Assembly: GCF_052425735.1 (NCBI RefSeq)
Contig: NC_135762.1
Location: forward strand, 6,944,001-7,008,000
Reading direction: 5' to 3'
DNA length: 64,000 nucleotides
Origin: Oculina patagonica
Lineage: Eukaryota
The translations under genes and the position numbers were made by a program. The number at the start of each line of letters is the position of its first letter. Position 1 is the first letter of the stretch. Shown piece after piece: positions 1 through 42,520 of the stretch. Under the pieces are notes generated by a model. The model saw nothing but the letters and a program-made list of their open reading frames with translations, was not told the origin of the DNA and ran no database searches.

Positions 1-232
1 AAGCTTTCTGTGAAATCGTCAGAAATCGTACGTGGAGGAAGTTGCAGGAGTTTAGTACTTTTGCGTGTTCATAGAAAACGTAGTCAGCGAGGAGAAGGAG
101 AATTACGATGGTTGGACCATATTTCTCTACGTTCATTCCTGTTATTTGCATTTTAGCGACTGCTCCATTGCTGTGTGCGGGGCAGACGTGGAAAAGAAAG
201 ATTGTGGTTTCACATCAAGATGGAATCGACAA

Positions 233-617
233 TTAACAATTATTGGATGAGGTTGAGATGATAGCGATAATTATCAAGGCCAAAGTTTCTATTATCTGCC
301 GAAGCCGAAGGCTGAGGCGGATAACAGACTGAGGCCTTGATAATTATCGCTATCATGCGAAAACCGAATCCAATAATTGTTTTATTTGCACATTCTGAGC
401 TGCACTTGTAAAGACAAGAGCGCGCACAAAATATACTTTTATAAGCTTACAACCTTTCGTCACTCTGCATGCATAAAACTATTGTCTGTAGGTATGACGT
501 CACTTCTACATATGTAAAATCTAGTGTCTGTAAGTATGACGTAAGAGAAACAGCAAGCAAGAATTAGCTGCGTGCTTATAGCCAATCAAAATCAAGCTGG
601 TGACACCAATGTATAAT
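233..617 (+). mobile_element. 385-bp non-autonomous element with internal hairpin and no TIRs, inserted in copy A
   Basis: Absent from copies B and C and flanked by AA on both sides. Perfect 24-bp inverted repeat at 258-281/333-356, plus outer arms at 235-248/368-381. A second copy lies at 11644-12116. Confidence 0.85.
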
Positions 618-3600
618 AACAACACTTGTTGGAGTGGAACAGATATGGAAATTCCTTGCAGAACATTAGACTACGCTCTTGCACATGTGACTAATTCGAC
701 TCTTGTGCAGTTATTGCCTGATCAGTCACCGTATAATCTAACCAGACATTTCAACTTTACAAATTTGCACGGGTTTGAATTGGCTGGAGGTCAAGACTCA
801 ATTGCTTCCATCAATTGCCAGAGAAATAAAGGAAGTCTGTCGTTTGAAAACAGCAGACATATCACACTTAGCAAAATCTTGCTCCGTGGCTGTGGTGGCT
901 TGCATGCAAGCACCACTGGTAATGAATTCCGTTATCCACACATACAATTTCTCTCTGCTGTCTTTTTTGTGTACTGTAAGAACATTGTTATAGATAGCTG
1001 CCAGATAGTTGAAAGTCCAGGAGTTGGGCTGAACATGTACGACATAGGTGGTGTTGTGCAGTTCTTGCATTCCAGGTTTGAAAGCAATCAGGCGTAACTT
1101 TAAATTCCCCTGAGAAAAACATTGCAATTGCCGGAGGTGGTGTTTTCATGGAGTTGACCTACCAGGGTGGAACATACCCGTTTGATCTAAATTCAACAGA
1201 GTTAACTGAATTTGATAGCAACAGCAGCTACACTTTCTACAACTGCACATTCAGAAACAACTATGCTCCTAGACAACAGTATGAAACAATAGTGAACAAA
1301 CCCACCGGTGATGACCACATTCCGTTTGGAAGAGGAGGAGGGTTGTCAATATTTCTAAAAGGGAAAGCACAAAATAATGGCATTTATGTCACTGAATGTC
1401 GGTTTGAAGATAATTATGCTGTTTGGGGTGGAGGAATTTTCATTGAAATTCGTGATGAAGTGCAAAACAACACGTTTGAGGTGACAAACTGCACATTCAA
1501 AAATAACAGTGCGTATTTTGCTGGAGGAGCAATCAGAAGTGGAACAACTGCCGATAGTGATCATGAGGGGTTACTTCCTAACAAAATGAGATATGAAGAT
1601 TGTAGATTTGAAAATAACAATGCCATCTGGGGTGGAGGAGTATCATATTACGAAACATGGAGCTCGTCTCTAAAGGGTGATGACGACATGCTACATATAG
1701 AATACAAAAACTGTCACTGGAAGAACAATGCGGCAACGTCAGGCTCTGCAATAGGAGTGGCTACCCAACCAGTCGTAAATGGCCTCCAAGACTTTTCTGT
1801 GAGAGGACTTAAGCTGTATATTATTGTTCTTGAAGACTGTAGTTTCTTTAACAACTCCATAATATTGACAGAAGATAGACAGGTTATTGGCCAAGGAGCA
1901 ATCTATTCATACTCACTCCCTGTCATTTTTAAAGGAGTTGTAAACATTGAATATAGTAACAATACCGCCATGGTGATTGAGAATGCAGCAGTGCATGTTT
2001 TTGGTAATGTAACCTTCAGAAATAACACTGGAAGTCAGGGGGGTGCATTAGGATTGTATGGCACATCAGTAATAATGCTTATGCCGCACAGTAACCTTAA
2101 CTTCTTTAATAACACTGCTCTACAACAGGGCGGAGCAATTTATGTGAGGGACTCTGGGCCACCTGTTATAGCTTTTAATACAACACAGCTCAAGATGCGA
2201 CATTGTTTTCTGGCTTACAACAACAGCTTCAGTCTGGAGAATGTCACTGAATGGCAGACCAAAATAGTTTTTAAGGGCAATCAAGTGCATACAAATGGTG
2301 GTGGAGACTCACTATTTGCCTCAACTCTTCAGGGATGCCGTCAAAATGGACAGCCCCGCATGAACAATATGTCGCTTGAGTGGCCTAATGTAATTCAGTA
2401 TCAAGATTCCAACCAGAGCATTAAAGATTTGATTTCTACTGATCCTATCTTAATCAAATTCAACCAGAAGGAGTGGAGAGTACTTTCTCCCAGTGAAGTC
2501 TTTGACGCAACTATTCAGTTGATTGATGAGAAGAACAGTATTGTTTCAGGAGTCGTCAAAGTGACCATTAATGATGAACCTGACCAAAATACAGCTAGCA
2601 GTGTAAGACTGGATACAGCTTCACATTTGTTTCTGGTGCAAGGAGATTCTTCCAAAATCAACAACTTGTCTCTTGTAGGAAAGGCTGGAAGGCCATTTAA
2701 GGTTCACATCAGCACAGTCGTGGGTCGCATTGTAGACAGCTCTTCCAAAGGGAATTTAACCTTACAGGCCTGCAATACTGGCTTTGAGCAAAGAGATGGC
2801 AAGACATGCTCTTGTATCTCAAGTGCTGAAGAATTTGGTATTTCAAACTGCAGCGCTGACTTTAGGCATGTGTTCTTGAAGCGAGGATACTGGGGTGGAA
2901 TGAAGGAACATAAATTTAGCACATACCCCTGTCCACCACACTACTGCAATTTCTCCAAGCATGATTCAACCTTCCAATACAATTCTGAAACAATGTGTAT
3001 TGATGGCCGTAATGGTACAAGTGTATTGTGCGGGACATGCAAAGATGGCTACTGGGTGAACCTAGGCAATGAAAACTGTACACAAACTTGTACAAATGAT
3101 TACTGGGGGCTATGTGGTGGCATTCTTTATTGTAACACCTCTTGTGGTGTTGTTAGTTTTTCGGATCAGGTTGGAAATTTTCACAACTTATTTAAACACC
3201 TGGCTTTACTCATATCAGACAATTTTGCATATCTCCTGCAAGAAGGACAGTACCTCGATCCATTTATCTCTTTCGTGATTAATGCCGCCAACTGGAAAAT
3301 CAGTGGTGTTGGAGTCTGTCTCTACAGAGGAATGACCAATCTAGAGAAACTTGGAGTAAATTACATTTTTCCCTTCATATATTCTTCTCATCCTTATGGT
3401 TTTGGCCAAAATTGCAAGGCGACGTCCAGGTTGTTTCATAAACAGGAATGTTGAGCATGCTTTTTGCACACTGTTGGTAATTTGTTACACAAATGTTACA
3501 ATAATCTCTTTCAGCATCGTCCATTATGTGCCTATACAAGGAAGATGGGTGCTATACGCAGATGGGAACATTGACTTTGTGAAAGACTGGAAAACACACT

Positions 3601-3790
3601 ATGTCTTGCTATTTACAATTATTGCCTGTCTTTGGATTCTTCTTTTTGTTATTTTGGTTCCATTGGTGCTTCTTTTTACACCGTGGTTCTTGAGGCACTT
3701 CCAGTATCTAAATAATTTTAGACTGTACTTTGACACTTTCCAGCAGTGCTTCAAAGTCAAGTACAGGTGGTTTGCAGCATATTACTTCAT

Positions 3791-5040
3791 CACTAGTCAA
3801 AGCACGAGAGACTCTTGAGAGACCAAGCCAGGTCAACTCCCCAAGGACGGAGTGCGATGACCGCGTCGCCAGAGCCCCCCAGAGGGACGAGACGCGCCCC
3901 AGAGGAGAGCGCCACGCCCCCACACCAGCCCCGCACCAGAGGGCGCAGCCAAGGGGGGGGGGGGGGCCGGCGGGGGCGAGACGGGGAGCCCCCCGGGGGG
4001 GGGGGGAGGGGGGTGAACAGAATCTCTTAATAAGATTTACGCCAGCAATCTTGAGTTGGACAAGAAAGAGAGCCACCTGAGATGAGTACCACTAATCAAA
4101 TGTAGAGTGGAATAAGGATGGACTCATTACCAACAACTGGAGAAGTAGTGGATGACTTAGTGATGGAACTACCCTCAAGATAAGAAAGTAAAAGAATTTA
4201 GACACTGTACCTGAGATGGGAAGAAATGGTGGATTAGTTTTGTTTGTTCTTGCCAACTATGTATAAATTGTGTCAGATGGTACGATGGATCGCGACGTGT
4301 GGGTTCCCCCTCTCGAGTTGTGAAATTGTGTTTTCGTCTTCGTTTGCCGGTCCCTCGAGCTGAAGATGCGGAGGTCGGGCCGGTGTACCCCCGCTTAGAG
4401 GGCAGTTGGGGGGTCCCCTAGAGCGCGCGTGCGCGGTCCCTCGAGGAAGAGCGTTGTGTGGTGCCGGAGGGGGCGCGTTCGCGTCGGCCGGTGGTACCCT
4501 CCGAGCTGTTGCTCAAGTGTGGCGTCGCGCCGGGTGAGCGGGTCGTGTCGTGTAGGGATGCGCGTTGTCTTGTCGGTAGGTCGGCGGTGTCGAGCGGATG
4601 GGCGGCGGGGGGCGGGGGAGGGCTGGTCGTCGTCGGGTGTGTCGGAGGGGCCGGTGTGAGCGGGGCCTGGTGGGCGGGGTGAGGCGGCCGGGTGAGGGGC
4701 GTGCGGGGTGGGGTGGGGGGCGGGGGGGGGGGTTGAGGGGGGGGCGGTGGTCGGGTGTCTTCGAGGGGGGGGGCGTGTGAGGGGGGGGCGGTGGTGGGGT
4801 GTCGAGGGAGGGGTCGTCGGGGTGGCCGGGTGAGGGAGCGGTTGTGTGTGTCGGCCGGGTGAGGCGTGCGCGGGTGGTGTCTGAGGGGATGGGGTGGTGG
4901 TCGGCCGGTGTGGGTGCGGTTTGTCGGTGGTCGGCGTGTCGGGGTGTTGGGCGGGTGTGTCTGAGCGGGGGGGGGGTGCGTGTGTGGGGGGGGGTGGTGT
5001 GCCGTGGAGCGTGGGGGTTTGCGTGCATTGGACATATCTC
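3791..5040. mobile_element. 1250-bp GC-rich insertion with 8-bp TSD in copy A (sequence probably garbled)
   Basis: TACTTCAT is duplicated at 3783-3790 and 5041-5048; removing the insert plus one TSD restores copy B sequence. The left arm is T-poor and the right arm A-poor, as expected for degenerate inverted arms. Confidence 0.75.
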
Positions 5041-6294
5041 TACTTCATTTGCCGCATCTTCATCTTGTTTATTGCCCTGTATTTTCCGTATGGGCCCCTG
5101 AAGAGAACCATTCTAGATGTGTCTAGTGTACTGATTGTGGTGACATGCCTTTACCTCCAGCCTTACAACGAACAGTACCAGTGGTTTAACAGGCTTGATG
5201 CAGTGCTTCTCACAAATTTGTGTTTGATTGTAATCTTCAGCTCAGGCATTGTAAGTGAAGCAGCATTGTCCACTCGTGATGCCCTAGAAATGACTGTGAA
5301 TGTCCTGGCGTATTTGCCTCTGGTTTATCTGATCGCTCTTGTTCTGTATCATGGTTGGAGATACTGCTGTACAAGGCTCTTTCCTGAAGACTACATTAAA
5401 GCAGAACAAAGGCCTAGGTCTAACTCCATGTCTGACACTTCTGGCCCACCCTCACCAATTTATATATTTTCATAATTGAGGCCTTATTTAAATGCCACCT
5501 GCACTTATGTGCTGAAACTAAGGTAGGGCCCTGAGGGGCAGGCTTGATTATTACCTGCTGCATGTTCAGGGTCTAAGCTCGCTCTCCTCCCTGAAACTGG
5601 GGAGGAACAAAGACCTGAACCTACCTGAGGCGTTGGTTTTTAACCCTCGGACGTATAAGGGGGGGGGGGGGGGTGGATGCCAACCCTCCATAAGGTTTTT
5701 TTATGTCAAAGGGGGGGGGATGCCACCCCCATAAGGTTTTTTGAAATTTGTCATAAATACAGCTGGCCTCGCCAAAAATCTCAAATCTTCATTTTTAACT
5801 TTTTCCAGTGAAACACATTGCAAGATTCTGGCTTGATTTTGCATCAATTTCCGTTATTTTGTGACTTTCTAAGAAAATGTTGAAACCCAAGATTGCAGAT
5901 CCATGAAGATAGAAGCTCTAATGACATCATGTGAGGTCATATGACGTCACAGCCAATTAAAATCATGTAAAATTATGCCATTGTCAATACTCTTTTTCTT
6001 TCGCCCATTGTAGTTTAACTAAAAATAACATGCAAACTGCGGTGATGATTATTACGGACAAATACATTGTTATAAAAAAATAGAGGCCTTTTACTTGACG
6101 TTTAATGTATGTTTCAACGAGACATCCTCAGAAGCTAGCACGTAACCATTAAAATGAAAACACAACTAAATTTAAATTCGTAAAATAATAGGTTTGACAG
6201 ATGACGAAAAACAGATGAGAAAAAAATGAATAAAATAAAAACAAATAATAATAATCAGGGGGAGGGAGGAGGAGGGGGGGGGGGGGGTCCTGGG

Positions 6295-8427: not shown

Positions 8428-8433
8428 AATAAA
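8428..8433 (+). promoter_or_regulatory. Candidate poly(A) signal of copy A
   Basis: AATAAA followed by a GT-rich tract. The context gaAATAAAagtcc is conserved downstream of all three paralogues. Confidence 0.4.
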
Positions 8434-14985: not shown

Positions 14986-15010
14986 TTCCAGGAAAGTTTG
15001 CGTCAATGAA
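14986..15010 (+). promoter_or_regulatory. STAT GAS-like site (TTCCAGGAA) next to bZIP-like TTGCGTCAA, about 100 bp upstream of copy B ATG
   Basis: Both motifs are retained upstream of copy C (42610-42639). Motif match only. Confidence 0.35.
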
Positions 15011-15096
15011 GTTTTCTGTGAAATCGTGGAAGTTTGGTACTTTATATTTGTGTGTTCGAAGAAAGCGTGGTCAGTTGCAGGAGAAAGAGAATCACG

Positions 15097-27043: not shown

Positions 27044-27064
27044 TTTACCCCAGTAAAAATATTT

Positions 27065-28024: not shown

Positions 28025-30802
28025 TTACAATTTCCTTTTGAACATACTTTTCGATGACCCGTTTGTAATAACAATTCGTTCTGTGTCTGTCATAACAACA
28101 TCATTAGGGATAGGTATGTCATTAAATATAAAGGGAGAATTGCTTTTCTCCACTGGCTTAAATTTGTAGCAAGCACAAAGATTAACTGAGTTAATTCTCA
28201 AGAAGCACTGGATTTTACCAAAACAAATGTGTCCACCTTGATCAGTATACTCAATGACAGAACAGTCCGTCTTTCGTGCGCGTTCATACATAATAGAGCT
28301 AAATCTCTGCCCATATTTGTTTTCAAATATGTAAAATATTTCTACGTTTCTGTTGTCATAATCTTCTTGGCAGTTGTTAACAATAAAATATACTCGTGCC
28401 AAGGTTAAAATGTTATCTACATCGGATGCTTTGGCTGTATTTTTTTGGGAGAAGTACCCTTCTGCAATTTTCACGGATGCCCGACTTTTTTCTCTAGGAT
28501 AGTCATTAAGTCTTTTCAAAACATTCTTTGCCTCTTTAGGCAATGTCTTGTCCTTAAGACGTTCCTTAATGAAATCCACCAGCCCATAACAAAGGCCAAG
28601 GGCACACCCTATCTGTTCCTTTGCATGGTGAGTTCCATGGACAAGGGGCTTCAAAAAGGCATTCATGTGTTCAAATGCGAAACAACTGTAAGCCCAGAGG
28701 GGACCCCGTCTGGCAACATAACTGGCCAAGTGTTGAAGAATGTGAATGTTCATGGTACATTTTGTAGTGTCGTACAGCGTTGCCATCAGAAGAACAAAAT
28801 CTTGTAACATTGCATCAGCCTCTTGTAAGTCATTTTGATCGATAGAATCAGATGTCAGAATTCCTACTGCTCCCACTAGTAGTGACCAGTGTAACAGATA
28901 CAATGGCTGCAAGATGGAATGCATTACTGGCAAAGAATAGTGCAACAACCAGTTTTTCAGTTCAGTAGCTTTCCAGTGTGATATTTCAGCTAGTGCACGT
29001 GGATATCTTCCGACGGTATCTGGGGGCTTGATGGCAAGCAGCCTCTCGGAAAGAACTTTCATTGTACTAGCTGCTCCAATGAAGTATGATCTGCGTTTGT
29101 CTTGCATCAAGAGTGTCATGACATACTTGACACATCCCAGTGAAACACAATGCATCCAGTCAATAGCAAAAGAATACACTAGATCAAAGGGATATTTTAG
29201 TTTAGAGAAAACTGAGTGACCTTTAACACCCATGACTGCGGTTTTTTGGGAGGCAGTAGCGGCGTAAGACAATTGATCCTCATGATTTCGTGGCTCGTTT
29301 TCTTGAAATGGCCAGCAACGGTGTAAGTTGTTTAGTCCATATCCTTTTCCCTCGCTTTTGCAAAGATGACAAGCACATTTTGCGTTGTAGCGCTTCATAT
29401 TCATGAGGTCAGCACGTGCTGGCAGATCTGCTGTGGCAACAAAAAGGAGACATCGAACATTGATATGACCTTCAGCACTATCCTTAATGTCTATTCCCTT
29501 TTCATGAAGAGCATTAAGTTTGTCCATTAACGGACTTAAAAATGTTATCATGCTTGGATCATGTTTGTCACAGTACATGTATGCTGGTATGATGTATTTC
29601 TTTTTAAAGCGGTATTCCTTAGGAAGTTCGTTAATCATAATATAAACAGGCCACAAATGACCTGCACGAGATGACGAAAATTTGTTCACACCATCTGTAT
29701 TAACTGTAAATGAAATGTTAAACGTTTCAGTCAAAAATCCACCTGGCAAAAGAAAGTTGTAATAATCCAGTCCATGATAAATGTCATGTATTTTCCGTCC
29801 CACTGAATTTTTCATTTGTTCTTTTCCCTTTCTAATGAGTTTGCAAAATTCAGAGTCTTTAAAAAACTCCTCGATTCTTTTTTCAAGATGGAGATCCAAA
29901 AATGTGTTGACTCCTTTGCCCGAGCATTGCGGCATTTTACAGTCGCCATGATTTAATAGGTTTAAGCAACTAGCACAGTATCGTATTGCTGTTGGCTCAA
30001 CAGTCCCAAAGTAGTTCTTGAGAAAAAGTTTCATTTTGTACACTGATTTCATAACTTCTCCACAATGGTCGCCAAGCAGTACTGCAATAACACGAAGAAG
30101 GTCTTGCCAGGCAATTTTGCTCAAATTGTGTTTCAGGACGAATGAGACAATTAGCACGTAAGCGAATATCTTTGAAACCGAACTTCCATCATACAGAGGT
30201 TCGTCATTTTGTTTACTTGACAAGTCATCAACAGTCGAAGAAGGTTCTTCAGGAGTGAAACTACAATCCATTTCCTCGTCCTCATCAGAACTCCAGAATT
30301 CCTCGTCCTCACTGTCACTGATACTTGCTTCACTTTCAGTTGGAGTCGAATTTAGTGAACCTTCTGAAATGTACGTATATTGCAAGGGCTCTTCGTCGCC
30401 CGATTCGCTTGTCTGATGCTCAGCGCATCCGCTATCATCCAACCAAGTGTCGTGGCCGTGATTATCGTCCGCACCTGCGTCACTCAAGAGAGCTGCTGCT
30501 GTTTCTGGGGTTTTCTCTGAATCATTTTTCCTTGTGTGGTATCTTTTTAGATGCCACGATGGGCTTTCTTGTTCGCTGTATGGGACATATTTTCTCTTTT
30601 CCTTATTCGCCGTCTTTCTGTAATAGTAGTTAAGCTGCCTTGATGTTTTTTTTGTTTGGCTCTGCGAAGGCTCCACGGGGTTATCACAGGAAAGCATTTC
30701 AGCTGTTTGCTCCCCTGTTCCCTCCACACGGACATTTGTATCAGGCATACCTTCTTCATCAGCTGTGTCAAAAGTGGAAACAGTTTCAGGTGACTCTTCC
30801 AT
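28025..30802 (-). CDS. EnSpm/CACTA-type DDE transposase (925-aa ORF; true C-terminus probably extends to 27885 after a frameshift)
   Basis: Motifs VNTDG, LWPVYIMINELP, ADLPARA, CACHLC, IDWMH, WKATEL and HILQHL..YV.RRGPLWAYSCFAFE are typical of CMC transposases. Acidic N-terminus and a YCASC..C..C zinc-finger-like motif. Confidence 0.92.
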   Translation of the reverse strand: MEESPETVSTFDTADEEGMPDTNVRVEGTGEQTAEMLSCDNPVEPSQSQTKKTSRQLNYYYRKTANKEKRKYVPYSEQESPSWHLKRYHTRKNDSEKTPETAAALLSDAGADDNHGHDTWLDDSGCAEHQTSESGDEEPLQYTYISEGSLNSTPTESEASISDSEDEEFWSSDEDEEMDCSFTPEEPSSTVDDLSSKQNDEPLYDGSSVSKIFAYVLIVSFVLKHNLSKIAWQDLLRVIAVLLGDHCGEVMKSVYKMKLFLKNYFGTVEPTAIRYCASCLNLLNHGDCKMPQCSGKGVNTFLDLHLEKRIEEFFKDSEFCKLIRKGKEQMKNSVGRKIHDIYHGLDYYNFLLPGGFLTETFNISFTVNTDGVNKFSSSRAGHLWPVYIMINELPKEYRFKKKYIIPAYMYCDKHDPSMITFLSPLMDKLNALHEKGIDIKDSAEGHINVRCLLFVATADLPARADLMNMKRYNAKCACHLCKSEGKGYGLNNLHRCWPFQENEPRNHEDQLSYAATASQKTAVMGVKGHSVFSKLKYPFDLVYSFAIDWMHCVSLGCVKYVMTLLMQDKRRSYFIGAASTMKVLSERLLAIKPPDTVGRYPRALAEISHWKATELKNWLLHYSLPVMHSILQPLYLLHWSLLVGAVGILTSDSIDQNDLQEADAMLQDFVLLMATLYDTTKCTMNIHILQHLASYVARRGPLWAYSCFAFEHMNAFLKPLVHGTHHAKEQIGCALGLCYGLVDFIKERLKDKTLPKEAKNVLKRLNDYPREKSRASVKIAEGYFSQKNTAKASDVDNILTLARVYFIVNNCQEDYDNRNVEIFYIFENKYGQRFSSIMYERARKTDCSVIEYTDQGGHICFGKIQCFLRINSVNLCACYKFKPVEKSNSPFIFNDIPIPNDVVMTDTERIVITNGSSKSMFKRKL

Positions 30803-32939
30803 GGCTTCTCTATAGATAACTTCACGACTAAGAATATTCGAACTGAATTGAAACTAAATGTTCTTACATCTGATACCCGACAATGTTGTGCAATTTAACA
30901 CACCAAGGAATGGAATGATCAGTATGCAAAACCGGCTCCAAAAAGTTTTGTTGTTACGTCGAAATAAGTACATCTATTACAAGCAGTGAATTCAGGCCAA
31001 TACTTGTGTAGTTATTAGGCCATAACATATCAAAGAGTTGTAATGTAAAAACAGTTGTATTCTTTCAAACTATTTATAGCCTGTGCCTGCATGCCAGAAA
31101 AACTAAAAACAAACCCTTGAACCTTTTGAGAAGGGTCAATATTTTTTTTGTCAAAATGCTTTTAACATTATATTCCTATGGAGCAGCGGAGGTTATTTAT
31201 CACAAATGATGTGCCTTAAATATTTGTCACTAATATAATAGTACACTGAGCTGAACATAGTTTCACTTTATCCTGTTTTGTATTTTCTAGTGATACACAC
31301 AAATGCATATATATATATATATATATCACAGGATTAAGTACAGTAACATATTAAACGGAACAAAAAACCTAGAAAGTTCGGTGTTGAATAAATTAGTTAA
31401 AGCGGGAAATTATAGTAGGCGGGAAATCGTTCCTTTGTGCCCACTCCTTTATCTTTGAGACTCATTTCTGGGACCCAACAACTAAATGGTTGTACTCTAT
31501 TCGTATTACCTGTACTCTGGCTTGATCATTGTGTTAAAGCTTAGTGTTCTTCATGACCAGCATCTTTTTAGAGTCTATTGTTTTTATACTGGCACATTTC
31601 CCGGGCACATTTCACTTGTGATGGGATTTTGCAAATTTATGTAATAGGTCAGTGTAACTTAAACCGATGATAGCAAATCGGACCAATCAGATCAATACTA
31701 GAAAAAGGCGCGCAAACTGAAACGACGTTACAAACGTGGTTCAGCGAATACATTTACTCCCACATCAACTAAGCGCTCTTACTTAAATGAACGATTCTCG
31801 CAGTCTCTCAACTTAAATCACAATATAATGGCACTATTCCATGTTATAGAATTTCCCAACGAGGAAAATTACAAGTCTCGAGGGCCGTTTGTTATAAGTA
31901 GCTCACGAAAGAAAAGTGAAGACGCGAAATGTTGAACTGGGAACAGTGGCAGTTCAATGGGACGTCTGATCCTCGGAAATCTGAAACAAGAATACTATGA
32001 TGGTGCAAGTTGATGGTAGGCACAAGGAAGGATTGCGGGCTGTTTATCGATCGTCTTAAAGCCAACAGAGAGCAGGCAGCAATAAACAACAAAGAGGGTA
32101 GAACGCGAAAACAGCCAACAAAATTACGCGACTACACAGCACATGTTGTTGAAGAAGGCAGCAATCCCGCCAAAACTACAGCAAGAGTAATGAAGAAGCC
32201 GTCACCGCGAGAGGAGACTTCTGATTCAGAGGGAAAGCTTGACAGCATTAAAGGTGGGAATAAATTAGTGGTTCACAAACCTAACAAAGAACTGCCTGCA
32301 GAAACCCAGAAATTGCGCCAAGAAGCTCAGCGAACTGAGTCAATCGAACAGGGCGGCGCAGCCACCAAAAAAGAAGAAGAGAGCCCACAGGAAAAAGGAA
32401 ACGAGAAGAAGAGCAGCGCGCCCGAATGAAGAGAAGGAAGCGAAGAAGGTCCGCGAGGGAGACACCGACAGGACGGCGAGAGAAAAAAAAATGTCTTCCC
32501 ACTGGGACCAGATAAGATCTGCGGGACGAGGCCCCGAGAAAGAAAAGAATAGAAAAGTCAAAAGAACGACACGCCAGAATTGAACAGGACGCCCCCCCTC
32601 GGAATCCCCAAAAAGGCACCGGAGGAAAGCCCACCACACACCAGCAAGAATGTCCTAAAATTCCAACGCCGAAGTCAGCGCCCGAAACAGAAAAAAGCAA
32701 CCGGGCAAAGAAAAGACGTCATCGTGAAAGTAGTACTGCGCGAATTGGCTTAAAACGCCACAAGAACAAGGCCGAAGGGGAAAAAAAAGAAATACAGCGC
32801 TGAAAGGTATAGAAGAGAGATGAGAAGAGAAAAAAAGACTGACATTCCCTTTAGTTTTTATATCATCGAGTTTGGAGTTTACAGCGATTTGTGCTTAAAA
32901 GGTGAAAATTTTACCTGTTTTATAAATTCAGACATTGAT

Positions 32940-33255
32940 TAAAGTATGACCGGAAAGGCCAAGAATGAGCTTCTAGAGTTACAATAATATTTTAGCATCT
33001 GGAGAGAAATCCAGGCTTTCCCTGCTCCAGTATAACATTCACTACAAATAAAGTAGACGAAAGCAAAGAGCAAATATTAATCTAAGAGAAATCCAGGCTT
33101 TCCCTGCTCCAGTGTAACATTCACTAGCCTTTACGGTATATAGAATAAAGTATGACCGGAAAGGCAAGAATGAGCTTCAGAGTTACATAATTAGACTAGA
33201 GAGATATCCAGGCTTTCCCTGCTCCAGTGTACATCATAGCTTTACGGTAATAGAA
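32940..33255 (+). repeat. Three degenerate ~100-bp tandem units
   Basis: gagaaatccaggctttccctgctccagt occurs three times (third copy slightly variant); aaagtatgaccggaaaggc occurs twice. Confidence 0.75.
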
Positions 33256-33632
33256 TATTAACGAAGGAAGAAAAGTACGTACTGAAAAGTACGACGCGAA
33301 GAAACGCACAAGAAAGGGGGAAAAAAGAAAAAGTGGAAAGATAGAGAAGAGAGAGGAGAAGAGAAAAAAAGAGACATCCCTTAGTTTTTACACGAGTTTG
33401 GAGATAGTTTCTGGCGAGAAAAAAACGCGTTTACACGATTTGTGTTAAAACGGTAAATTACAAAATAAAAATAGAAAACTCAAAAATTAATGAAGGACCT
33501 CATAATTTATTTTTTTTCAGTGTTAAACCCGGCAGCCGAATGTTTTAAAACCCAAAATAACCCATCCTCCTCAAAATAAAACAAAGCATACACAATACCA
33601 CGGCGAACGGCCCCAAAGAAACAAGGCAGGCG

Positions 33633-34054
33633 TTGAGCGTTCGGTGACGAAAGTCCGCCACCGATTAACTTCCGGTGTGACACTTTAGTGGCGTGACAAA
33701 GGTGGCACGTGGTGTTGTTTTCGCGCCAAAACGAACTCGGCGTTGGAAGCGACGAAGTTCTTCTTGGGCTAAACGGCTTAGCGTTGGAAGCGACGAAGCT
33801 CTCGGTTAAATAGAAATACAAAGCGTTCCTCTATATATAGTCACTCAAGTAGATTTTTTCAAATTCAGGGGATTTGTCCCCTCAGTGAGGAGACCACTCT
33901 CAGATCAGTTCGCAACGTGTGCCTAATAGCGTTGAGGTTCTGTTGATCTAGGTACTAGGTCTCGGTCCTACTGGACCTAGTAACTAATAAGGGTATCCCT
34001 TTAGGACACACCGGAAGTTACATCGGTGGCGGACTTTCGTCTCCGAACGCTCAA
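33633..34054. mobile_element. Nested MITE with ~48-bp TIRs
   Basis: 33633-33679 is the reverse complement of 34007-34054 with two differences. GCG lies on both flanks. Confidence 0.8.
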
Positions 34055-36953
34055 GCGTTTTGTAGCTATTTTTACTACTTTGCCGAGGCAATTGTTGAGG
34101 CCTTAAGTTGGAAATCGCTTATTTCTACACCGACATCTCATCAGAATCTCAGCAGGTTCAAAGGAATTGATGGAAAAACGGGAAGATTTTGACTGCCGGG
34201 TATGTAGTCTTTGAAAAATCGTGCCCGTGAGTCACAAAAGTCGTAATTGCAAAACCAAATGACATTGTAAAAACTCGCTTGTATTTCCGACCGAAAATTG
34301 AATTAACTCGGAGCTAGTTTAATATTTAATTAATTATATATTAAATTTTTGACTGCCGGGTATTATTTTGAACAACCGTGCCCGTGAGTCGAGGATTTAT
34401 AGTATGCCGAAGCAAGAGAATCGTCCACAACAAAAGCAAAACATTATTTAGAATCGCTTCGCATTTCTCAGCAAATATCGAATACTCTCGCAGGGTTTCA
34501 ACTTTAGTTTTTGTAGAAATTATTCTATAAGAGTTGACACCGGAGTCAGAGTACGAATTTTTTCTAAGTGTCGAAGAATCAAGATTTTGTAGTATGCCCA
34601 AGCTCGAAAATTTCCTCAAACACAAAGCCAAAATATAATTAAATCGCTTGGCATTTCTAAGCAAAGATTATAGTTGTGAGGAGGATTGATTGTTCCGTGA
34701 AATTTAGAATATTTCAGATTGCCGGGTATTAGTATTTTGAAAACACTTCCCGGCTGCCGGGTATCTAGACACTATGTTGTTTTTATTGCTTGCGTGACCT
34801 TCCTCGTGTTTTCAAGGCTAGAGAGGTTTACTACCGTTACAAATTATTGAATCATGGTCTGGAACTTAATAAGAAGGCAGGCAATGAACAACAATCTACG
34901 TCGACAAAACCCGGGTTGTTCTTACTACCCGGCTACGTTTATACAATTGAACGTTTGACTTCAACTTCGCCCGTGAAAACAGCCGCCCTGATGGCGCGCC
35001 ATCATGACAATTCCTAAGAAGCTTTGAACTTATTTGATTTTACATTAGAACTAATGGTAATTACAACTATCAGAAGCACTGTAAAAAATACAGACCAAAC
35101 TGCTGCAGGACAGTCCGAGATTCAAAGCACGACTTCAAATAGCTAGGAGATACAGATACCTAATAACTTTAAAACGAACCTTTAACAGACGATAAATTCC
35201 TGAATGTAATAAGCCTGTCTAGTCTTGAGCAACATCATCCTGTTACCTTGAGAGGTTTACTGTCTTCCAGCACACATAACTTTAATTTAAATGTTGGCTG
35301 ATCAGATATGAGCCATTAACAGATATCAACCTGTCTGTTTAAGTCACGATATGTTTTCTTGTTGACAGAAATTTTGTTTAACTCGCATTCCAGCTCTGCG
35401 GCCTGAAGAATGAACAGTATGCTTGGAAAAATACATTACTTGCCATTGTAACGCAGCCCCATTTTACTTTTCACCTTGTTTAAACAAAGATGTTGTTGTT
35501 GTTGTTCTGAGCACTCAGTCTGTTCATGTTGGCTATGGGCTGTTTGATCAGGATAAAAGTCGCCACATTTTTAAGCAAATTGAATGTTCAATGCGTGAAT
35601 AAACATGGCGAACCAGCTCTCCTTTTGTGCTCGTACCTTTCCGGCAGAGGAGCCTGGGGCTCGAAATTTTCCAAAATGCGGACAGTGCTGCATCGATAGG
35701 GCGAAATATCTATTTGTTTTTTTTTTTTTCAACATTTTAAATTTTTTTTCTCGTCTCAACTAACATAAATCTGAAACAAAAGGAAATGAAAAGTCAAGCT
35801 TTTGAAAAATTTTAAACCAAAGATAAATTTAAACCACAACTTACATTGTAATACGCTTTGTGCAGTTTTATTAACATGCTCTAATTTTCTCTAGCTCATC
35901 CTTCCAAGCTTTTTCGAGCCCTTAAAGGGTAATTAATCAAATTAATTTTATTCTTATTTGCTGTAGGGTCAAGCAGAAGATGGGGATGGCTACATCAACA
36001 GGTATAAGTTTTTTTAATAACCAGTTTTTACACAAAGAATGGTTTTCAGTTGCCTGTCATTGGGCATAAACCAAAGTAGTCACAGACAATAAGAAGCCAT
36101 CACAAAAAGAAAGCAACTCAAAAATTTTATAAGAATACAGTAAAACGAAATGCAAAATAAATTAATTAAGCTTAGTTTTGGGCTACATGTGTGAAAATGA
36201 CTAACCATTATTAAATAATTTTTTTATTTTTAATTTTCCCTTAAATTTAAATAACAAAATTTGCATGATTTTTTAGTCAATCTCATTTTTTTCTTTACTT
36301 TATTACCAGAAGCAGAGGTTTTAGTAATAGTTGCTCGTAAGTAATATCAACTCTATTATATGGCTTAACTACCATTGTACGTTGGCTGCTGGGCGGGCAT
36401 TATTTTTGTAATGACCAGGCATATGAAAATTTTCTCGACTCGACGGTTGAGTGTGAGTAAAAGCTACTAGCGAGGGGGCAAAAACAACAAAAAATGACGA
36501 CAAAATATAATTATCTTTTCAATAACTGAAAGAAAAATATAAGCATACCAATACTTCTTTAGTATGAGCGACGAAGAGAGCCACAGAGAGCGAGTTTTAC
36601 CTCCAGTGTTTTTTCCCTTGATTATACTCTTTTTTTCGAATAGTGCTAAAAGGCCATATAATAAATAACTTATTAACGTCGTCCGTTCTCATTACAGGGG
36701 AAGCCCGACTGATGTATGACTTCGCTGTCGCTCGGTCAATACATCAAGGCCTCGTCTGAGATTCCCTGTTGACCTCACTGGTTAATAAGTAGTGTATAAA
36801 TTTAAGAAAATTATGTCTAAAAAATTGACTTTCACAATTTATCTCTTTTTATCTTTCACTTACAGAGAATTATCTTATGGTAGATGATGAAAGCTTTGAA
36901 GTGGAAACAAGCTCTATTTTATCAGGTATTGCACATGTCAGTATTTAAGTCAA

Positions 36954-37272
36954 TCAGTGTAAAACAAAGACTGCAGACTGCAGACCGGGGGGTAAAATGC
37001 AGACTTCAGACTGCAGACCAAGGGTAAAATGCAGACCCAGGTTAAAGTAACAAATTATATGAGTCACAAAGCCATTTTCCCTCACATGTTTGCTCAGCGA
37101 AACGTTGTCTGACGTGTACATTCCTTCAAACTTTGGAACGGGCTGGGAAAAAGGCTTTGTGACTCGTATTTCATTACTTTACCCTCTATCTGCATTTACC
37201 CCTGGCCTGCAGTCTGCATTTTACCCTTAGTCTGCATTTTACCCCCGGTCCGAAGTCTATGTTTAACACTGA
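36954..37272. mobile_element. Nested MITE with gcagact/ggtaaaatgcagac subterminal repeats
   Basis: Termini tcagtgtaaaaca.../...tgtttaacactga with mirrored internal repeats. Confidence 0.75.
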
Positions 37273-39037
37273 CTGTATTTAAAATACTGTTTTTTTAGTT
37301 CTCACTTGAGTATAGCCTCCCACACAGTCATTTTAGGGGTGATTTCACTCCCCGCGTGAGAGGCTACAACTTGAAGGATTTTAAATTCCCAAAATAGAAA
37401 GAGAGGAACTTAGTTATGTGACACGGAGGCAAAAAATGGCTGAAACAAATAATAATGGCTTGATGATCACATTTCAGACTGATGGAGGCAGGGGGTTAAT
37501 GGACATGAATGGAGAGGGGAGGCTTATTACAAAATCTGCCTTTAAAAGGGCTGCTTATTAATATTAGAGCTAATTATCAACTTAGTTTACTTAACACTAG
37601 CTACAGTCAAATTCACCCAGAGACATTTTTCATGCACCTTTCAGTGATGGCTTCAGAATAGATAAATATATAACTTAATGTAACTACTTATAAATTTATA
37701 AGTTTTGTTGACATTACTCTCTTATTTGTAACCCTTTCTGGACAACTTATAATAACACCTTAATATTTAACATAAATTTATTCTAACTAAATTAAAAAAA
37801 CAGTTTTAACCAAATAAAAACCAATTTCTGCTTTTAGATGCATTCAAAATTTTAAGCCACTTTGTATCTATCATTGCTATTCAGGAACATCCACTAAACT
37901 AAATCCAGGAGCATCTGGTGATACTTCACTGCAGCATGTGAAGCTGTCAGCACAACTGAAGGGGCTGACAAATCAGGTCAGCAGAATTGAACGCCTGCTT
38001 GACAGTTTCATCAACTGCAAAGCCTGCATCAAGAAGGCTTACAAGGCCTGTGCCACATCCACCTGTACTACAAGCTCCCCAGTGCAAAATAATACAGCAC
38101 CTAAGCCTTTTGTTATACTATTAAAAGGATCCAAAAGCTTGCCCTGAAACCTTTGAGCCAACTAAAACACAAGCACAGCCACCACCATCAATTCATCCAG
38201 TGGATTCAACTGACACCACATGGTTGGTAATCCCCAGCATGTATTTATTTAGTCGGGCAAAGAAAATTTAAAATCAAGAAACCCTCAATGTCCTCGAGAA
38301 CTGGTACTAGAGAATAAAAGATGCCCATACAGGACCTGGTTAAGTATTAAAAAAGAATAGTAATTATCTAAAAAATAATATGAGAATAAAAAATTAAGCA
38401 AAAGTATATTTAAAGGAGATAAGTTTTAGTTAGTAAAGTTTGGGGCCAGCCGCCCAAAATAGGTAGAATATAAAGAATAATTGAAAAGAAAGGCCGCGCC
38501 AGCGAGAGATTAGAAAGTGTAAGAAAAAGTAGTATGCACACAAAGGTAGAAACAGCAAGAAAACACAAATGCGCTTTGACCGCGGAGGAGTGTCCAATAC
38601 AGGTTCCAATGAAGTTGCAAATTGATACCTGTAATTGGACACCCACGTGATCGCGCGCCGATTCGCGAAAGGCGCGCGAGAACCAATAAAATCGAGAATT
38701 TTTTAAGACACGATTAGGAAAAAAAAGCCTAATTCATCAAGTGCGCCAGGCAGTATGACTTATTGACAATAAATAAGCAAACAAGCTGCCTTTTTTTTCC
38801 ACCTTCAGGAAAAGTCTCTGTAAGGTGTCAAAGGGTTCATTAGTTTCCCTAATTAATGTTCTGCCTCATCTTAATTTTAGATGTATTTTGGGTGACATGT
38901 CATTATAGTCAGCCCTTAACTTTTACCATAATAAAATTGTTTAATTTTTTTTACATAAATTTGTTAGTTTTGTATTTTCTGTTTTGTTTTTGCGTACTTC
39001 AAAACACATTCATTATCACACATCTTAAAGATTCTTA

Positions 39038-39250
39038 TGTGATCACAAAGATTAAATGTGAATTGTGATCACAGGCGTGATACGTTTGTGATCACAGTAT
39101 TCACATCAGTGATCACACCTATTCCAACAACCTGTGATCAAACCTGACACACACCCATCATCACACTGTGATCAATGTGATCACAGTAAAGACGCGTGAT
39201 CACACCTGTGATCACAGTTGTGATCACAGTGTGATCACTGTGTGATCACA
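39038..39250. repeat. Right subterminal array of GTGATCAC
   Basis: About 10 perfect copies plus variants. Confidence 0.9.
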
Positions 39251-42200
39251 AAATATTTTTACTGGGGTGACTTTGAAGCACTTCTTGAAAGTGTCAAAGT
39301 AAAGTCTAAAATTATTTAGATACTGGAAGTGCCTCAAGAACCACGGAGTAAAAAGAAGCACCAGTGGAACAAAAACGACAAAAAGAACAATCCAAAGACA
39401 GGCAATGATGGTAAATGGCAAGTGTGTTTTCCAGTCTTTTACAAAGTCAATGTTTCCATCTGCGTAAAGCACCCATCTTCCTTGTATAGGCACATAATGG
39501 ACAATGCTGAAAGAGATTATTGTAACATTGGTGTAACAGATTACCAACAGTGTGCAAAAAGCATGCTCAACATTCCTGTTTATGTAACAACCTGGACGGC
39601 GCCTTGCAATTTTGGCCAAAACCATAAGGATGAGAAGAATATACGAGGGGAAAATGTAGTTTACTCCAAGTTTCTGCAGATTGGTCATTCCTCTGTAGAG
39701 ACAAGTTCCAAAACCACTGAGTTTCCAGTTGGCGCCATCAATCACAAAAGAGATAAATGGATCGAGGTACTGTCCTTCTTGCAGGAGAAATGAAATTGTC
39801 TGATATGAGTAAAGCCAGGTGTTTAAATAAGTTGTGAAAATGTCCAACTTGATCCGAAAAACTAACAACACCAGGAGAGGTGTTACAATAAAGAATGCCA
39901 CAACAAGCCCCACGTAATCATTTGTACAAGATTGTGTACAGTGTTCATTGCCTAGGTTCACCGAGTAGCCATCTTTGCATGTCCCGCACAATACACTTGT
40001 ACCATCACGGCCATCAGTACACATTGTTTCAGAATTGTATTGGAAGGTTGAATCATGCTTGGAGAAATTGCAGTAGTGTGGTGGACAGGGGTATGTGCTA
40101 AATTTATGTTCCTTCATTCCACCCCAGTATCCTCGCTTCAAGAACACATGCTTAGAGTCTGCGCTGCAGTTTGAAATACCAAATTCTACAGCACTTGAGA
40201 TACAAGAGCATGTCTTGCCATCTCTTTGCTCAAAACCAGTATAGCAGCGCTTTAAGGTTAATGTCCCTTTGGTAGATCTGCGAACAATGCGGCCCACGAC
40301 TGTGCTGATGTGAACCTTAAGTGGCCTTCCAGCGTTTCCTACAAGGTACAAGTTGTTGATTTTGGAAGAATCCCCTTGCACCAGAAACAAATGAGAAGCT
40401 GTACCCAGTCTTACACTGCCAGCTGTATTTTGGTCACATTCATCAATGATGGTCACTTTGACGACACCTAAAACAGAACTGTTCTTCTCATCAATCAACT
40501 GAATAGTTGCGTCAAAGACTTCACTAGGAGAAACTATCCACTCCTTCTCATTGATTTTTATTAAGACAGGATCAGTAGAAATCTGTTCTTTAGTTCTCTT
40601 GTTGGAATCTTGATACTGAATTACACTAGGCCACTCAAGTGATTGGTTGTTTATGCGGGGCTGTCCACTTTGACGGCATCCCTGAAGCGTTGAGGCAAAT
40701 ACTGAGTCTCCACCACCACTTGTAAGCACCTGATTGCCCTTAAAAACTACTTTGGTCTGCCATTCAGTGACATTCTCCAGACTGTAGCTGTTGTTGTAAG
40801 CCAGAAAACATTGTCGTGTGTCAAGCTCTGTTGTATTAAAAGCTATAACGGGTGGCCCAGAATCCCTCACATAAATTGCCCCACCTCGTTCTTGCGCAGT
40901 GTTATTAAAGAAGTTAAGGCTACTGTGCGGCATAAGCATTATTACTGATGTGCCATACAATCCTAATGCACCCCCCTGACTTCCAGTGTTATTTCTGAAG
41001 GTCACATTACCAAATATGTGTACTGCTGCATTCTCAATCACCATGGCAGTATTGTTACTATATTCAATGTTTACAACTCCTTTAAAAATGAGAGGGAGTG
41101 AGTAAGAATAGATTGCTCCTTGGCCAATAACCTGTCTATCTTCTGTCAATATTATGGAGTTGTTAAAGAAACTACAGTCTTCAAGAACAATAATATACAG
41201 CTTCAATCCTTTTGCAGAAAAGTCTTGGAGGCCATTTACAACTGGTTGGGTAGCCACTCCTATTGCAGAGCCTAACGTTGCCGCATTGTTCTTCCAGTGA
41301 CAGTTTCTGTATTCTATATGTAGCTTGTCGTCATCACCCTTTAGAGAAGAGCTCCATGTTTCATAATATGATACTCCTCCACCCCAGATGGCATTGTTGT
41401 TTTCAAATCTACAATCTTCATATCTCATTTTGTTAGGAAGTAACCACTGGCGATCACTATCGGCAGTCGTTCCACTTCTGATGGCTCCTCCAGCATAATA
41501 CGCACTGTTATTTTTGAATGTGCAGTTCGTCACCTCAAACGTGTTGTTTTGCACTTCATCGTGAAGTTCAATGAAAATTCCACCACCCCAAACAGCATAA
41601 TTATCTTCAAACCGACATCCAGTGACATAAATGCCATTATTTTGTGCTTTTCCTTTTAGAAATATTGACAACCCTCCTCCTCTTCCGAACGGAATATGGT
41701 CATCGCCAGTGGGATTGTTCACTATTGTTTCGTACTGTTGATTGGGAGCGTAATTGTTTCTGAATGTGCAGTTGTAGAAAGTGTAACTGCTGTTGCTATC
41801 AAATTCAGCTAACTCTGTTGAATTTAGGTCAAATGGGTATGTTCCGCCCTGCTGGTAGGTCAACTCCATGTACACACCACCTCCGGCAATTGCAATGTTT
41901 TTCTCAGAGGAATTTGTAATCGCCCGATTGCTTTCAAAGCAGGAATGCGAGATCTGCACATCACCACCTATGTCGTACATGTTGAGCCCAACTCCCGGAC
42001 AGTCCACTATCCAGCAGCTATCTATAACAATGTTCTTGCAGTACACAAAAAAGACAGCAGAGAGAAATTTTATGTGTGGATACCGAAATTCATCGCCAGT
42101 GGTGCTTGCATGCAAGCCACCACAGCCACGGAGCAAGATTTTGCTAAGTGTGATGTCTCTGCTGTTTTCAAACGACAGACTTCCTTGATTCCTTTGGCAA

Positions 42201-42520
42201 TTGATGGAAGCAATTGAGTCTTGATCTCCAGCCAATTCAAAGCCGTGCAAATTTGTAAAGTTGAAATGTCTGGTTAGATTATACGGTGACTGATCAGGCA
42301 ATAACTGCACAAGAGTCGAATTAGTCACATGTGCAAGAGCGTAGTCTAATGTTCTGCAAGGAATTACTCTCCCAGTTCCACTCCAACAAGTTTTGTTGTT
42401 GATTCCATCTCGTTGAGAAACCACAATCTTTCTTTTCCACGTCTGCCCCGCACACAGCAATGGAGCAGTCGCTAAAATGCAAATAACAGGAATGAACGGA
42501 CAGAAATATGGTCCAACCAT
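39224..42520 (-). CDS. Copy C, 5' part: 1084 native codons reading into the TIR (1098-aa truncated product, ectodomain plus ~5 TM)
   Basis: Open from ATG 42520 and highly similar to copy B up to CFKV (39269), then TPVKIFCDHTVITL* encoded by the transposon end. Confidence 0.88.
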   Translation of the reverse strand: MVGPYFCPFIPVICILATAPLLCAGQTWKRKIVVSQRDGINNKTCWSGTGRVIPCRTLDYALAHVTNSTLVQLLPDQSPYNLTRHFNFTNLHGFELAGDQDSIASINCQRNQGSLSFENSRDITLSKILLRGCGGLHASTTGDEFRYPHIKFLSAVFFVYCKNIVIDSCWIVDCPGVGLNMYDIGGDVQISHSCFESNRAITNSSEKNIAIAGGGVYMELTYQQGGTYPFDLNSTELAEFDSNSSYTFYNCTFRNNYAPNQQYETIVNNPTGDDHIPFGRGGGLSIFLKGKAQNNGIYVTGCRFEDNYAVWGGGIFIELHDEVQNNTFEVTNCTFKNNSAYYAGGAIRSGTTADSDRQWLLPNKMRYEDCRFENNNAIWGGGVSYYETWSSSLKGDDDKLHIEYRNCHWKNNAATLGSAIGVATQPVVNGLQDFSAKGLKLYIIVLEDCSFFNNSIILTEDRQVIGQGAIYSYSLPLIFKGVVNIEYSNNTAMVIENAAVHIFGNVTFRNNTGSQGGALGLYGTSVIMLMPHSSLNFFNNTAQERGGAIYVRDSGPPVIAFNTTELDTRQCFLAYNNSYSLENVTEWQTKVVFKGNQVLTSGGGDSVFASTLQGCRQSGQPRINNQSLEWPSVIQYQDSNKRTKEQISTDPVLIKINEKEWIVSPSEVFDATIQLIDEKNSSVLGVVKVTIIDECDQNTAGSVRLGTASHLFLVQGDSSKINNLYLVGNAGRPLKVHISTVVGRIVRRSTKGTLTLKRCYTGFEQRDGKTCSCISSAVEFGISNCSADSKHVFLKRGYWGGMKEHKFSTYPCPPHYCNFSKHDSTFQYNSETMCTDGRDGTSVLCGTCKDGYSVNLGNEHCTQSCTNDYVGLVVAFFIVTPLLVLLVFRIKLDIFTTYLNTWLYSYQTISFLLQEGQYLDPFISFVIDGANWKLSGFGTCLYRGMTNLQKLGVNYIFPSYILLILMVLAKIARRRPGCYINRNVEHAFCTLLVICYTNVTIISFSIVHYVPIQGRWVLYADGNIDFVKDWKTHLPFTIIACLWIVLFVVFVPLVLLFTPWFLRHFQYLNNFRLYFDTFKKCFKVTPVKIFCDHTVITL

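Follow-up and report, generated by a model that had tools for sequence, protein, structure and literature searches.

The Dictyostelium protein SadA, with nine transmembrane segments and an ectodomain of epidermal growth factor (EGF) repeats, is found on the cell surface, and adhesion to the substrate and phagocytosis both require it (PMC2173991). The apicomplexan cysteine repeat modular proteins (CRMPs) also have nine transmembrane segments, with the N-terminus outside and the C-terminus inside (N-out/C-in), and act as sensors of host contact that license rhoptry exocytosis; their ciliate homologues are needed for mucocyst discharge (PMC9670195). Schizosaccharomyces pombe Pkd2 is a putative plasma-membrane channel with an essential transmembrane domain, for which AlphaFold gives nine helices (10.1101/2022.08.11.503631), and Flc1 acts in calcium homeostasis (PMC9600462). 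The beta-helices of the Pmp proteins, characterized by FxxN and GGA(I/L/V) repeats, are adhesins (PMC11166332, PMC10715098). Here we describe a gene of the coral Oculina patagonica whose product is a new ectodomain variant, of the Pmp beta-helix kind, on a stalk and membrane chassis of the SadA/CRMP/Flc-Pkd2 type. The gene lies in a window of 64,000 nucleotides (NCBI RefSeq GCF_052425735.1, contig NC_135762.1, positions 6,944,001 to 7,008,000), and coordinates below are counted from the first nucleotide of its forward strand unless a contig is named.

A study in sponges lists a 'Flc morpholog' on the basis of structure, without further analysis (PMC10176882). Our literature searches found no paper on an animal family with a Pmp beta-helix and nine transmembrane segments, on DUF7630 or on the named coral gene identifiers, and none in which SadA, the CRMPs and Flc/Pkd2 are treated together. 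At the level of the family, this is an unstudied animal receptor- or channel-like family that is evolving conservatively, not in the manner of an immune repertoire. We infer, with a little better than even confidence, that the protein is an adhesion or contact sensor built upon an ancient and modular nine-transmembrane chassis.

Beta-helix ectodomain and stalk

The copy of the gene termed B is a single-exon open reading frame (ORF) on the forward strand (15097-18801), encoding 1234 amino acids followed by a stop codon. The protein begins with a signal peptide of residues 1-25 (15097-15171), read by inspection from a hydrophobic N-terminus ending CAG/Q. This is followed in order by a right-handed beta-helix of the Pmp type from about residue 29 to 640 (15181-17016), a beta-rich linker of residues 641-754 (17017-17358), a cysteine-rich stalk of residues 755-865 (17359-17691), a membrane domain of about nine helices at residues 866-1201 (17692-18699) and a short tail of residues 1202-1234 (18700-18798). 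The ectodomain is 860 residues long, stabilized by cysteines, and contains 24 N-glycosylation sequons; Pfam finds no match in it to ML (PF14558) or TRP_N. The tail has a CC pair, a YxxPhi-like motif and a serine-rich end. It is modelled with low pLDDT and has no signalling domain recognizable by Pfam, and on the topology discussed below it would be cytosolic.

The first-pass annotation of this DNA had proposed a Pmp-type right-handed beta-helix, and this is upheld by profile searches, motif counts and structural prediction alike. Copy B scores above the gathering cut-off for both PF13229 (36.4 bits; cut-off 25.9) and PF02415 (27.1 bits; cut-off 20.6), and the results for the other two copies, A and C, are similar. 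Residues 29-640 contain 11 FxxN motifs (3.0 expected from shuffled sequences) and three GGA[ILV] motifs (0.07 expected), counts that were reached in none of 2000 shuffles. The same region also holds four GGG[VIL] motifs, and six FxxN-x(4-8)-GG[AG] units that are in register. The AF2 model of the ectodomain (pLDDT 88.9) is a stack of about 45 short strands, leading into the beta-rich linker and then the cysteine-rich region. Comparison of this model with the PDB using Foldseek gave 25 matches at E ≤ 1e-3, and those listed are all right-handed beta-helix proteins; they include phage tailspikes, GH136 lacto-N-biosidases, polysaccharide lyases and the pneumococcal adhesin PfbA. In the linker DSSP assigns strands between residues 647 and 749 of the model.

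The possibility that the gene encodes a chlamydial Pmp autotransporter was considered and rejected. There is no Pfam match to an autotransporter domain and no beta-barrel; the C-terminal 370 residues are helical transmembrane segments. Moreover, the gene is kept across corals.

The stalk is of the ephrin-receptor-like or DUF7630 kind. It gives a weak match to PF24633, and its structural neighbours are labelled Ephrin_rec_like or DUF7630. Alignments were made of 118 homologous ectodomains and 111 stalk-plus-membrane regions; the stalk cysteine residues at positions 759, 773, 834, 845, 848 and 861 are invariant, and C865 is nearly so.

The membrane module and its relatives

The stalk and membrane domain were modelled together (residues 755-1234) using AlphaFold, with a pLDDT of 88.7 and a pTM of 0.87. 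In the model a small beta module rich in disulphides precedes nine helices of membrane length; a beta-hairpin separates helices 4 and 5, and helices 5 and 6 have short amphipathic helices between them. Eight of the transmembrane segments are clear by hydropathy while helix 2 (residues 893-912) is marginal, in agreement with the nine or so helices counted in the first-pass annotation. A hand count from the sequence places about 18 lysine and arginine residues in the inside loops compared with 9 in the outside loops, which fits an N-out/C-in arrangement. The putative topology of the copy B protein is one of nine transmembrane helices, N-out/C-in.

Two motifs previously picked out in the membrane region, W...YF..R and LQPY.....N.LD, are both present, although their spacing is slightly different from that given, i.e. 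W-x4-YF-x2-R and LQPY-x7-N-x-LD. The best-conserved residues of the domain are R1087, R1097 and P1133-Y1134, all cytosol-facing, and the polar residues N900, Q907, N1142 and D1145 within the helices. N900 and Q907 lie on one face of helix 2, and N1142 and D1145 are at the start of helix 8; the position corresponding to D1145 is glutamate in the leucine-rich repeat (LRR) family of corals that is described below. These conserved residues would suit the coordination of an ion, or a conformational switch.

A Foldseek search of AFDB clusters gave thirty matches with E values from 3e-17 to 6e-10, extending over both stalk and membrane domain with TM-scores of 0.5-0.7 by query. Labels among these matches are 'TRP C-terminal domain-containing', 'Right handed beta helix domain-containing', 'ephrin type A/B receptor-like' and Plasmodium CRMP2, and they include fusions in which Sushi, IPT/TIG, laminin-EGF or glycine-betaine-binding ectodomains are joined to the stalk and membrane domain. 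Of the Swiss-Prot models, the Dictyostelium protein DDB_G0281931 is matched at E = 3.8e-10 and SadA at 4.5e-5, with DDB_G0287209, TmcB/TmcC and the fungal Flc/Pkd2 members listed below also in the top 13. No animal protein is found among the reviewed UniProt matches of the module, so the standard model animals may lack the family. In the ESM Atlas, searched by shape plus language-model features, the same stalk and membrane domain is found beneath Chlam_PMP in Porifera (TM-score 0.80), beneath LRRs in Cnidaria and beneath Ephrin_rec_like. PF06011, the model of the fungal Flc/Pkd2 domain, is present in 11-15% of the members of these neighbours, and some of the clusters have TIR domains. A profile search of 1.84 billion representatives returned 11,010 proteins at E ≤ 1e-3, of which 2,884 are at E ≤ 1e-30, yet few members have been studied (SadA, the CRMPs and Flc/Pkd2). 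These data show that the stalk and membrane module belongs to a very large pan-eukaryotic family that includes SadA, the CRMPs and, more distantly, Flc/Pkd2.

The membrane region had been said to recall the fungal FLC/Pkd2 'TRP' membrane domain rather than a G-protein-coupled receptor (GPCR); the structural searches bear this out. All eight fungal Flc/Pkd2 members of Swiss-Prot (Flc1, Flc2, Flc3, YOR365C, S. pombe Pkd2, Trp1322, Trp663 and Cryptococcus Flc1) were retrieved, with E values between 1e-4 and 9e-3 and probabilities of 0.99-1.00. The matches cover residues ~105-480 of the model with TM-scores by query of 0.25-0.41, prediction being compared with prediction. At the level of sequence the connection is transitive. 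PF06011 gave no match to the membrane region of copy B at E ≤ 10 (hmmscan; gathering score 28.5 bits), and just one of 112 aligned family members matches it, at E = 0.12. However, when the coral genome was searched with PF06011 a gene with LRRs, stalk and membrane domain (L028, at C2:18.28 Mb) scored 29.7 bits against the required 28.5. Alignment by hhalign of a profile of the coral orthologues of L028 with the membrane profile of the beta-helix family gave 95.4% probability and E = 2e-8 over 304 columns. Two motifs are common to the LRR and beta-helix families, K-x2-[YF]-R-x-[FY]...[YF]F-x2-R lying before and in helix 6, and [QR]-P-[YF]-x(5-8)-N-x-[LV]-[DE] between helices 7 and 8, and both had been singled out in the first-pass annotation. 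Kinship with PF06011 is thus supported by fold and by transitive profile homology, and does not extend to formal membership of that family.

We note that L028 (C2:18282353-18286183) has a plant-like LRR ectodomain on the cysteine-rich stalk and nine-transmembrane chassis, and that its LRR and membrane parts are in two overlapping frames, owing perhaps to an intron, to a frameshift or to a fault in the assembly. The same stalk and chassis also bear plant-like LRR ectodomains in genes at C1:20.77-20.98 Mb.

The relationship with the fungal proteins bears upon where the coral protein might act. It could be a channel or transporter located in internal membranes, similar to yeast Flc (with FAD import to the endoplasmic reticulum (ER), and hypotonic Ca2+ release) or the vacuolar Flc1 of Cryptococcus, with a luminal beta-helix that serves in folding or anchoring and not in recognition. 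Such a role would accord with the fold-level kinship with Flc1-3, YOR365C, Pkd2 and Trp663/1322, with the conserved polar residues inside the helices (N900, Q907 and N1142..D1145) and with the localization of the fungal proteins (PMC9600462). By contrast, the nearest structural relatives (E of 1e-10 and better) are not fungal but ectodomain-rich proteins of the SadA, CRMP and DDB_G0281931 types, and a long, cysteine-stabilized ectodomain with so many sequons is typical of surface proteins. The plasma membrane is also where S. pombe Pkd2 is found (10.1101/2022.08.11.503631). We consider a role in internal membranes to be unlikely, and favour a sensor at the cell surface.

A large adhesive ectodomain carried on a multi-pass domain also resembles the design of adhesion GPCRs, and CRMPa has been called GPCR-like by PANTHER (PMC9670195). 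Nevertheless, it is most improbable that the protein is a divergent seven-transmembrane receptor of this type, or a canonical six-transmembrane TRP or polycystin channel. There was no Pfam match to a 7tm or ion-transport family at E ≤ 10, and GPCR models in Swiss-Prot were matched only at E ≥ 0.1 with TM-scores of 0.11-0.16. The model shows about nine helices in place of seven or six. Searching the PDB with the membrane domain using Foldseek gave nothing at E ≤ 0.001, with generic helix bundles at E ≥ 0.1, and a VIA comparison with 48,161 chains gave a best Z of 7.1 over about 115 residues, again for generic helix bundles. Kinship with GPCRs and with canonical TRP/polycystin channels is accordingly rejected on the results of Pfam, of Foldseek against the PDB and of the Swiss-Prot models, and is close to refuted.

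Copies, selection and expression

The copies in the window were compared by searching it with the intact ORF in tblastn, by blastn of the B locus and by codon-level alignment. There are exactly three paralogues, A and B on the forward strand and C on the reverse. By codon-level alignment copy B is 92.2% identical to A and 94.2% identical to C in DNA; in protein B and C are 92.5% identical. The first-pass annotation had reported three close paralogues with intronless coding regions, only one of them intact, and this proved correct: the three span 108-42520, the coding sequence of B is a single exon, and B is the one intact copy of the three, A being frameshifted and C split by a transposon.

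Copy A (108-5460, forward strand) is a decayed pseudogene, recovered by tblastn as pieces in three frames. Its frame, compared with that of B, is shifted by indels at codons 201, 872, 910 and 959, and it carries two insertions. The first is of 370 bp (248-617), seen as a gap in the blastn alignment to B, and the second is of 1250 bp (3791-5040) at about codon 1092. The latter is flanked by an 8-bp duplication (TACTTCAT), i.e. a target duplication, and is G+C-rich (GC 0.535). There is no other full copy of it in the genome, where it matched no recognizable repeat family; a 205-amino acid ORF within it has no Pfam match, and no terminal inverted repeats were visible on reading its ends. An A-like copy with one TAA stop lies on an unplaced scaffold (L004; C1647:1515-7754) and is 97.1% identical to positions 1-3790 of the window. 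This copy could represent a divergent haplotig of A or an additional recent duplicate. Since it includes the 370-bp insertion while lacking that of 1250 bp, either the former is old and the latter recent, or C1647 is a divergent haplotype.

Copy C is in two pieces on the reverse strand. Codons 1-1084 (42520-39268) form an open frame (tblastn residues 5-1084, 92.5%), as does the remainder from codon 1085 (27043-26597; tblastn 94%), the translation of which reaches the stop codon. Neither piece is interrupted by stops or frameshifts. Between them, at codon 1084, is a DNA transposon of 12.2 kb (27044-39267) with near-identical terminal inverted repeats and subterminal GTGATCAC arrays. It encodes a tnp2-type transposase in an ORF of 925 amino acids (28025-30802, reverse strand) that matches PF02992 Transposase_21 at 6.6e-15, with a weak match to DUF4218 in addition. 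The insertion is probably young, because the copy that it interrupts is otherwise open.

Selection was estimated pairwise by the method of Nei and Gojobori. Comparison of B with C gave a dS of 0.16 and dN/dS of 0.22. From this ratio copy C has been under purifying selection for nearly all of its history, and the transposon hit is recent. With an intact copy on contig C7 (91% identical, and outside the window) the values are dS 0.19 and dN/dS 0.23, and with a more distant gene (P0018, hypothetical protein ACROYT_G018246; ORF at C5:6539995) they are 0.88 and 0.25. B against A gives dS 0.18 and dN/dS 0.32, which shows a partial relaxation of selection on copy A. Divided by domain, dN/dS between B and the C7 copy is 0.22 in the beta-helix, 0.40 in the linker, 0.19 in the stalk and 0.17 in the membrane domain. 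The linker has the highest ratio of the protein (0.34-0.40), and every domain of this subfamily lies within 0.17-0.40. No sliding window of 150 codons exceeded 0.34. All domains are under purifying selection, and there is no sign of diversifying selection in the ectodomain.

A search of the 529-Mb assembly with the entire protein gives about 17 loci of the beta-helix family. Apart from the copies in the window, those on C7 and C1647 and the P0018 gene (67% identical, and 0.4 Mb upstream of the window copies), there is a second cluster of about eleven copies at C5:24.17-24.60 Mb plus one on C3, with 35-39% identity. Here dN/dS is about 0.3-0.45, and the ectodomain is equal to the membrane domain. 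In a tree the A, B, C, C7 and C1647 copies group in a single species-specific clade (SH-aLRT 98), with two sequences from other samples (83-84% identical to B) as its sister, and the eleven copies of the second cluster form another single clade. Within C5:24.41-24.60 Mb there are three pairs, L007/L008, L014/L015 and L009/L012, in which identical or almost identical members lie 121-138 kb from each other; this suggests a segmental duplication, large and very recent, or a duplication in the assembly.

At least 13 of the approximately 17 loci are open single ORFs of 1229-1428 codons. The family had been described as often knocked out, and the genome-wide copy count does not sustain this. The cluster in the window is species-specific, with one copy intact, one recently split by a transposon and one decayed. 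Of the birth-and-death evolution that had been proposed, the lineage-specific tandem clusters are real in the tree, but the picture in the window amounts to ordinary turnover of a gene cluster.

The first-pass annotation had gone on to suggest a repertoire for recognition of microbes or self. In its fuller form this would be a fast-evolving set of genes for recognition of microbes, symbionts or self, with an immune or allorecognition role, maintained by birth and death. There are indeed species-specific expansions, with five close copies in one clade and eleven in the second, and the window has both a pseudogene and a transposon-hit copy. TIR domains occur on some distant relatives of the chassis, and beta-helices and LRRs are both common as recognition modules. 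But the ectodomain evolves no faster than the membrane domain in either cluster, with dN/dS in the range 0.17-0.45 overall, and the sliding windows and the number of intact loci are equally at odds with rapid diversification. Full-length homologues of 1220-1260 amino acids are found in other corals, and orthologues are kept across coral families; among coral species the ectodomain is 55-84% identical, just a few points below the membrane domain. The absence from the tail of a signalling domain recognizable by Pfam also argues against such a role. The low dN/dS and the open loci come close to the stable, purifying-selected family that the first-pass annotation had itself set against its proposal. 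We therefore think a recognition repertoire improbable, and retain the adhesion or contact sensor as the preferred reading.

The membrane module is more widely distributed in this genome than the beta-helix. A search with the membrane profile gave 42 matches at E ≤ 1e-5, representing about 35 loci, which is a lower bound, with further clusters on contigs C1, C12, C6, C8, C13 and C14. Five clusters were sampled, and these have ectodomains of LRRs (C1), of another, PF13229 type of beta-helix (C12), or without a Pfam match. Since LRRs, a second kind of beta-helix and other ectodomains are carried on the same module, the chassis is modular within one genome.

Copy B is likely to be transcribed. 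Sequencing contigs from two studies that bear the label of this species cover 14988-18927 in pieces at ≥97% identity, while 400-bp flanks on each side are uncovered, so that the coverage looks like that of an unspliced transcript about as long as the ORF. The RNA status of the runs behind these contigs is a guess; the contig depths of 6-29 are far above expectation for DNA runs of 70-210 Mb on a genome of 529 Mb. Just downstream, at 19913-20100, the summed contig depth exceeds 1000 compared with about 10 over the gene, and this is a highly expressed or a highly repeated element.

Two further genes lie in the window. A neighbouring ShKT gene on the reverse strand had been said to have coding introns, in keeping with what is seen: an ORF resembling a signal peptide (59439-59573) and a ShKT-like one with six cysteines (58086-58211) are separate pieces that read as a multi-exon gene. 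The other, at 48662-49249 on the forward strand, is an ORF of 196 amino acids with a Promethin domain (PF16015, 2.6e-11); it is apparently single-exon, and unrelated to the family described here.

Possible function and comparison with known systems

We suggest that the protein would be an N-out glycoprotein of the cell surface, in which the rigid, glycosylated beta-helix could bind an extracellular ligand, either a glycan or a protein surface. The disulphide-locked stalk, modelled as one unit with the transmembrane bundle, might transmit binding to the nine-transmembrane module. The module could then answer inside the cell, with a flux of Ca2+ through it or controlled by it; alternatively, its output may be the recruitment of cytoskeletal or exocytic machinery. 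Candidate working parts would be the conserved cytosol-facing motifs and the membrane-embedded N..D/E pair.

Several points weigh against this proposal. The fungal relatives are partly in the ER or vacuole, so that a location at the surface is an assumption, made on the signal peptide, the sequons and the precedent of SadA and the CRMPs. No coral member of the beta-helix family directly passes PF06011, leaving a link to Flc/Pkd2 that is structural and transitive, and comparison with the fungal models gives TM-scores of only about 0.4. There is no solved structure for any relative, so that the comparisons of fold are all of one prediction with another. Lastly, two poly(A) raw-read runs contained no reads on the copy B gene, and the evidence for expression comes from contigs of runs whose RNA status was guessed.

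A more specific form of the proposal is that the coral protein might be an animal counterpart of the CRMP contact sensors. Binding of prey, a microbe or a substrate surface by the beta-helix would gate the nine-transmembrane module, with entry of Ca2+, and so license regulated exocytosis in specialized cells such as cnidocytes, mucocytes or adhesive cells. We regard this as quite unlikely. If it were true, versions with LRR, beta-helix and other ectodomains would tune what is sensed, and SadA, the CRMPs, Flc/Pkd2 and the coral families would constitute a single ancient eukaryotic superfamily of 'ectodomain-gated 9-TM' signalling proteins, possibly missing from the standard bilaterian models.

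Corals and sponges carry dozens of genes in which adhesin-like ectodomains, such as the Pmp beta-helix and LRRs, are placed on this module. Should the module prove to be a channel or transducer gated by its ectodomain, these would represent an unrecognized class of receptor in early-branching animals, and would offer a tractable free-living comparison for the biology of the apicomplexan CRMPs.

The four described systems resemble the coral protein in different parts. With the chlamydial Pmp proteins (PF02415) the likeness is in the ectodomain, where the coils of the right-handed beta-helix have the same FxxN and GGA(I/L/V) repeats, and the Pfam repeat model is passed. These are bacterial autotransporters with a C-terminal beta-barrel, whereas the gene described here is part of a coral chromosome and its product has a helical, nine-transmembrane anchor. 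With the fungal Flc/Pkd2 proteins (PF06011) the likeness is in the nine-helix membrane domain, placed below an extracellular or luminal N-terminal domain. In the fungal proteins, however, that domain is a small ML-like (PF14558) immunoglobulin fold (PMC9600462) in place of the beta-helix and cysteine-rich stalk, and they have long disordered C-terminal tails where that of the coral protein is short.

The resemblance to SadA (Q8I7T3) and DDB_G0281931 and to the CRMPs takes in the stalk as well. SadA and DDB_G0281931 have a signal peptide and then nine transmembrane segments, the ectodomain of SadA ending in cysteine-rich EGF-like modules, and the Foldseek matches given above extend over stalk and membrane domain. 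Their ectodomains are EGF repeats in SadA and LRRs in DDB_G0281931, compared with the Pmp-type beta-helix here, and the identity is about 14%. The CRMPs (Plasmodium CRMP2 Q8IBR8, Q7RCD9) have a cysteine-rich modular ectodomain on a nine-transmembrane module, and they too are matched over stalk and membrane domain (E ~3e-10, TM-score 0.55-0.60 by query). They differ in having MAR, Kringle or EGFR-like ectodomains, in being far larger proteins, and in forming a complex at the exocytic site of the rhoptry or mucocyst. The N-out/C-in topology has been shown experimentally for Toxoplasma CRMP (PMC9670195), while that of the coral protein is putative. Common to SadA, the CRMPs and the coral protein is a cysteine-rich module of the EGF- or ephrin-receptor-like kind placed directly before the first transmembrane helix, which in the coral protein is modelled with the membrane domain as a single unit.

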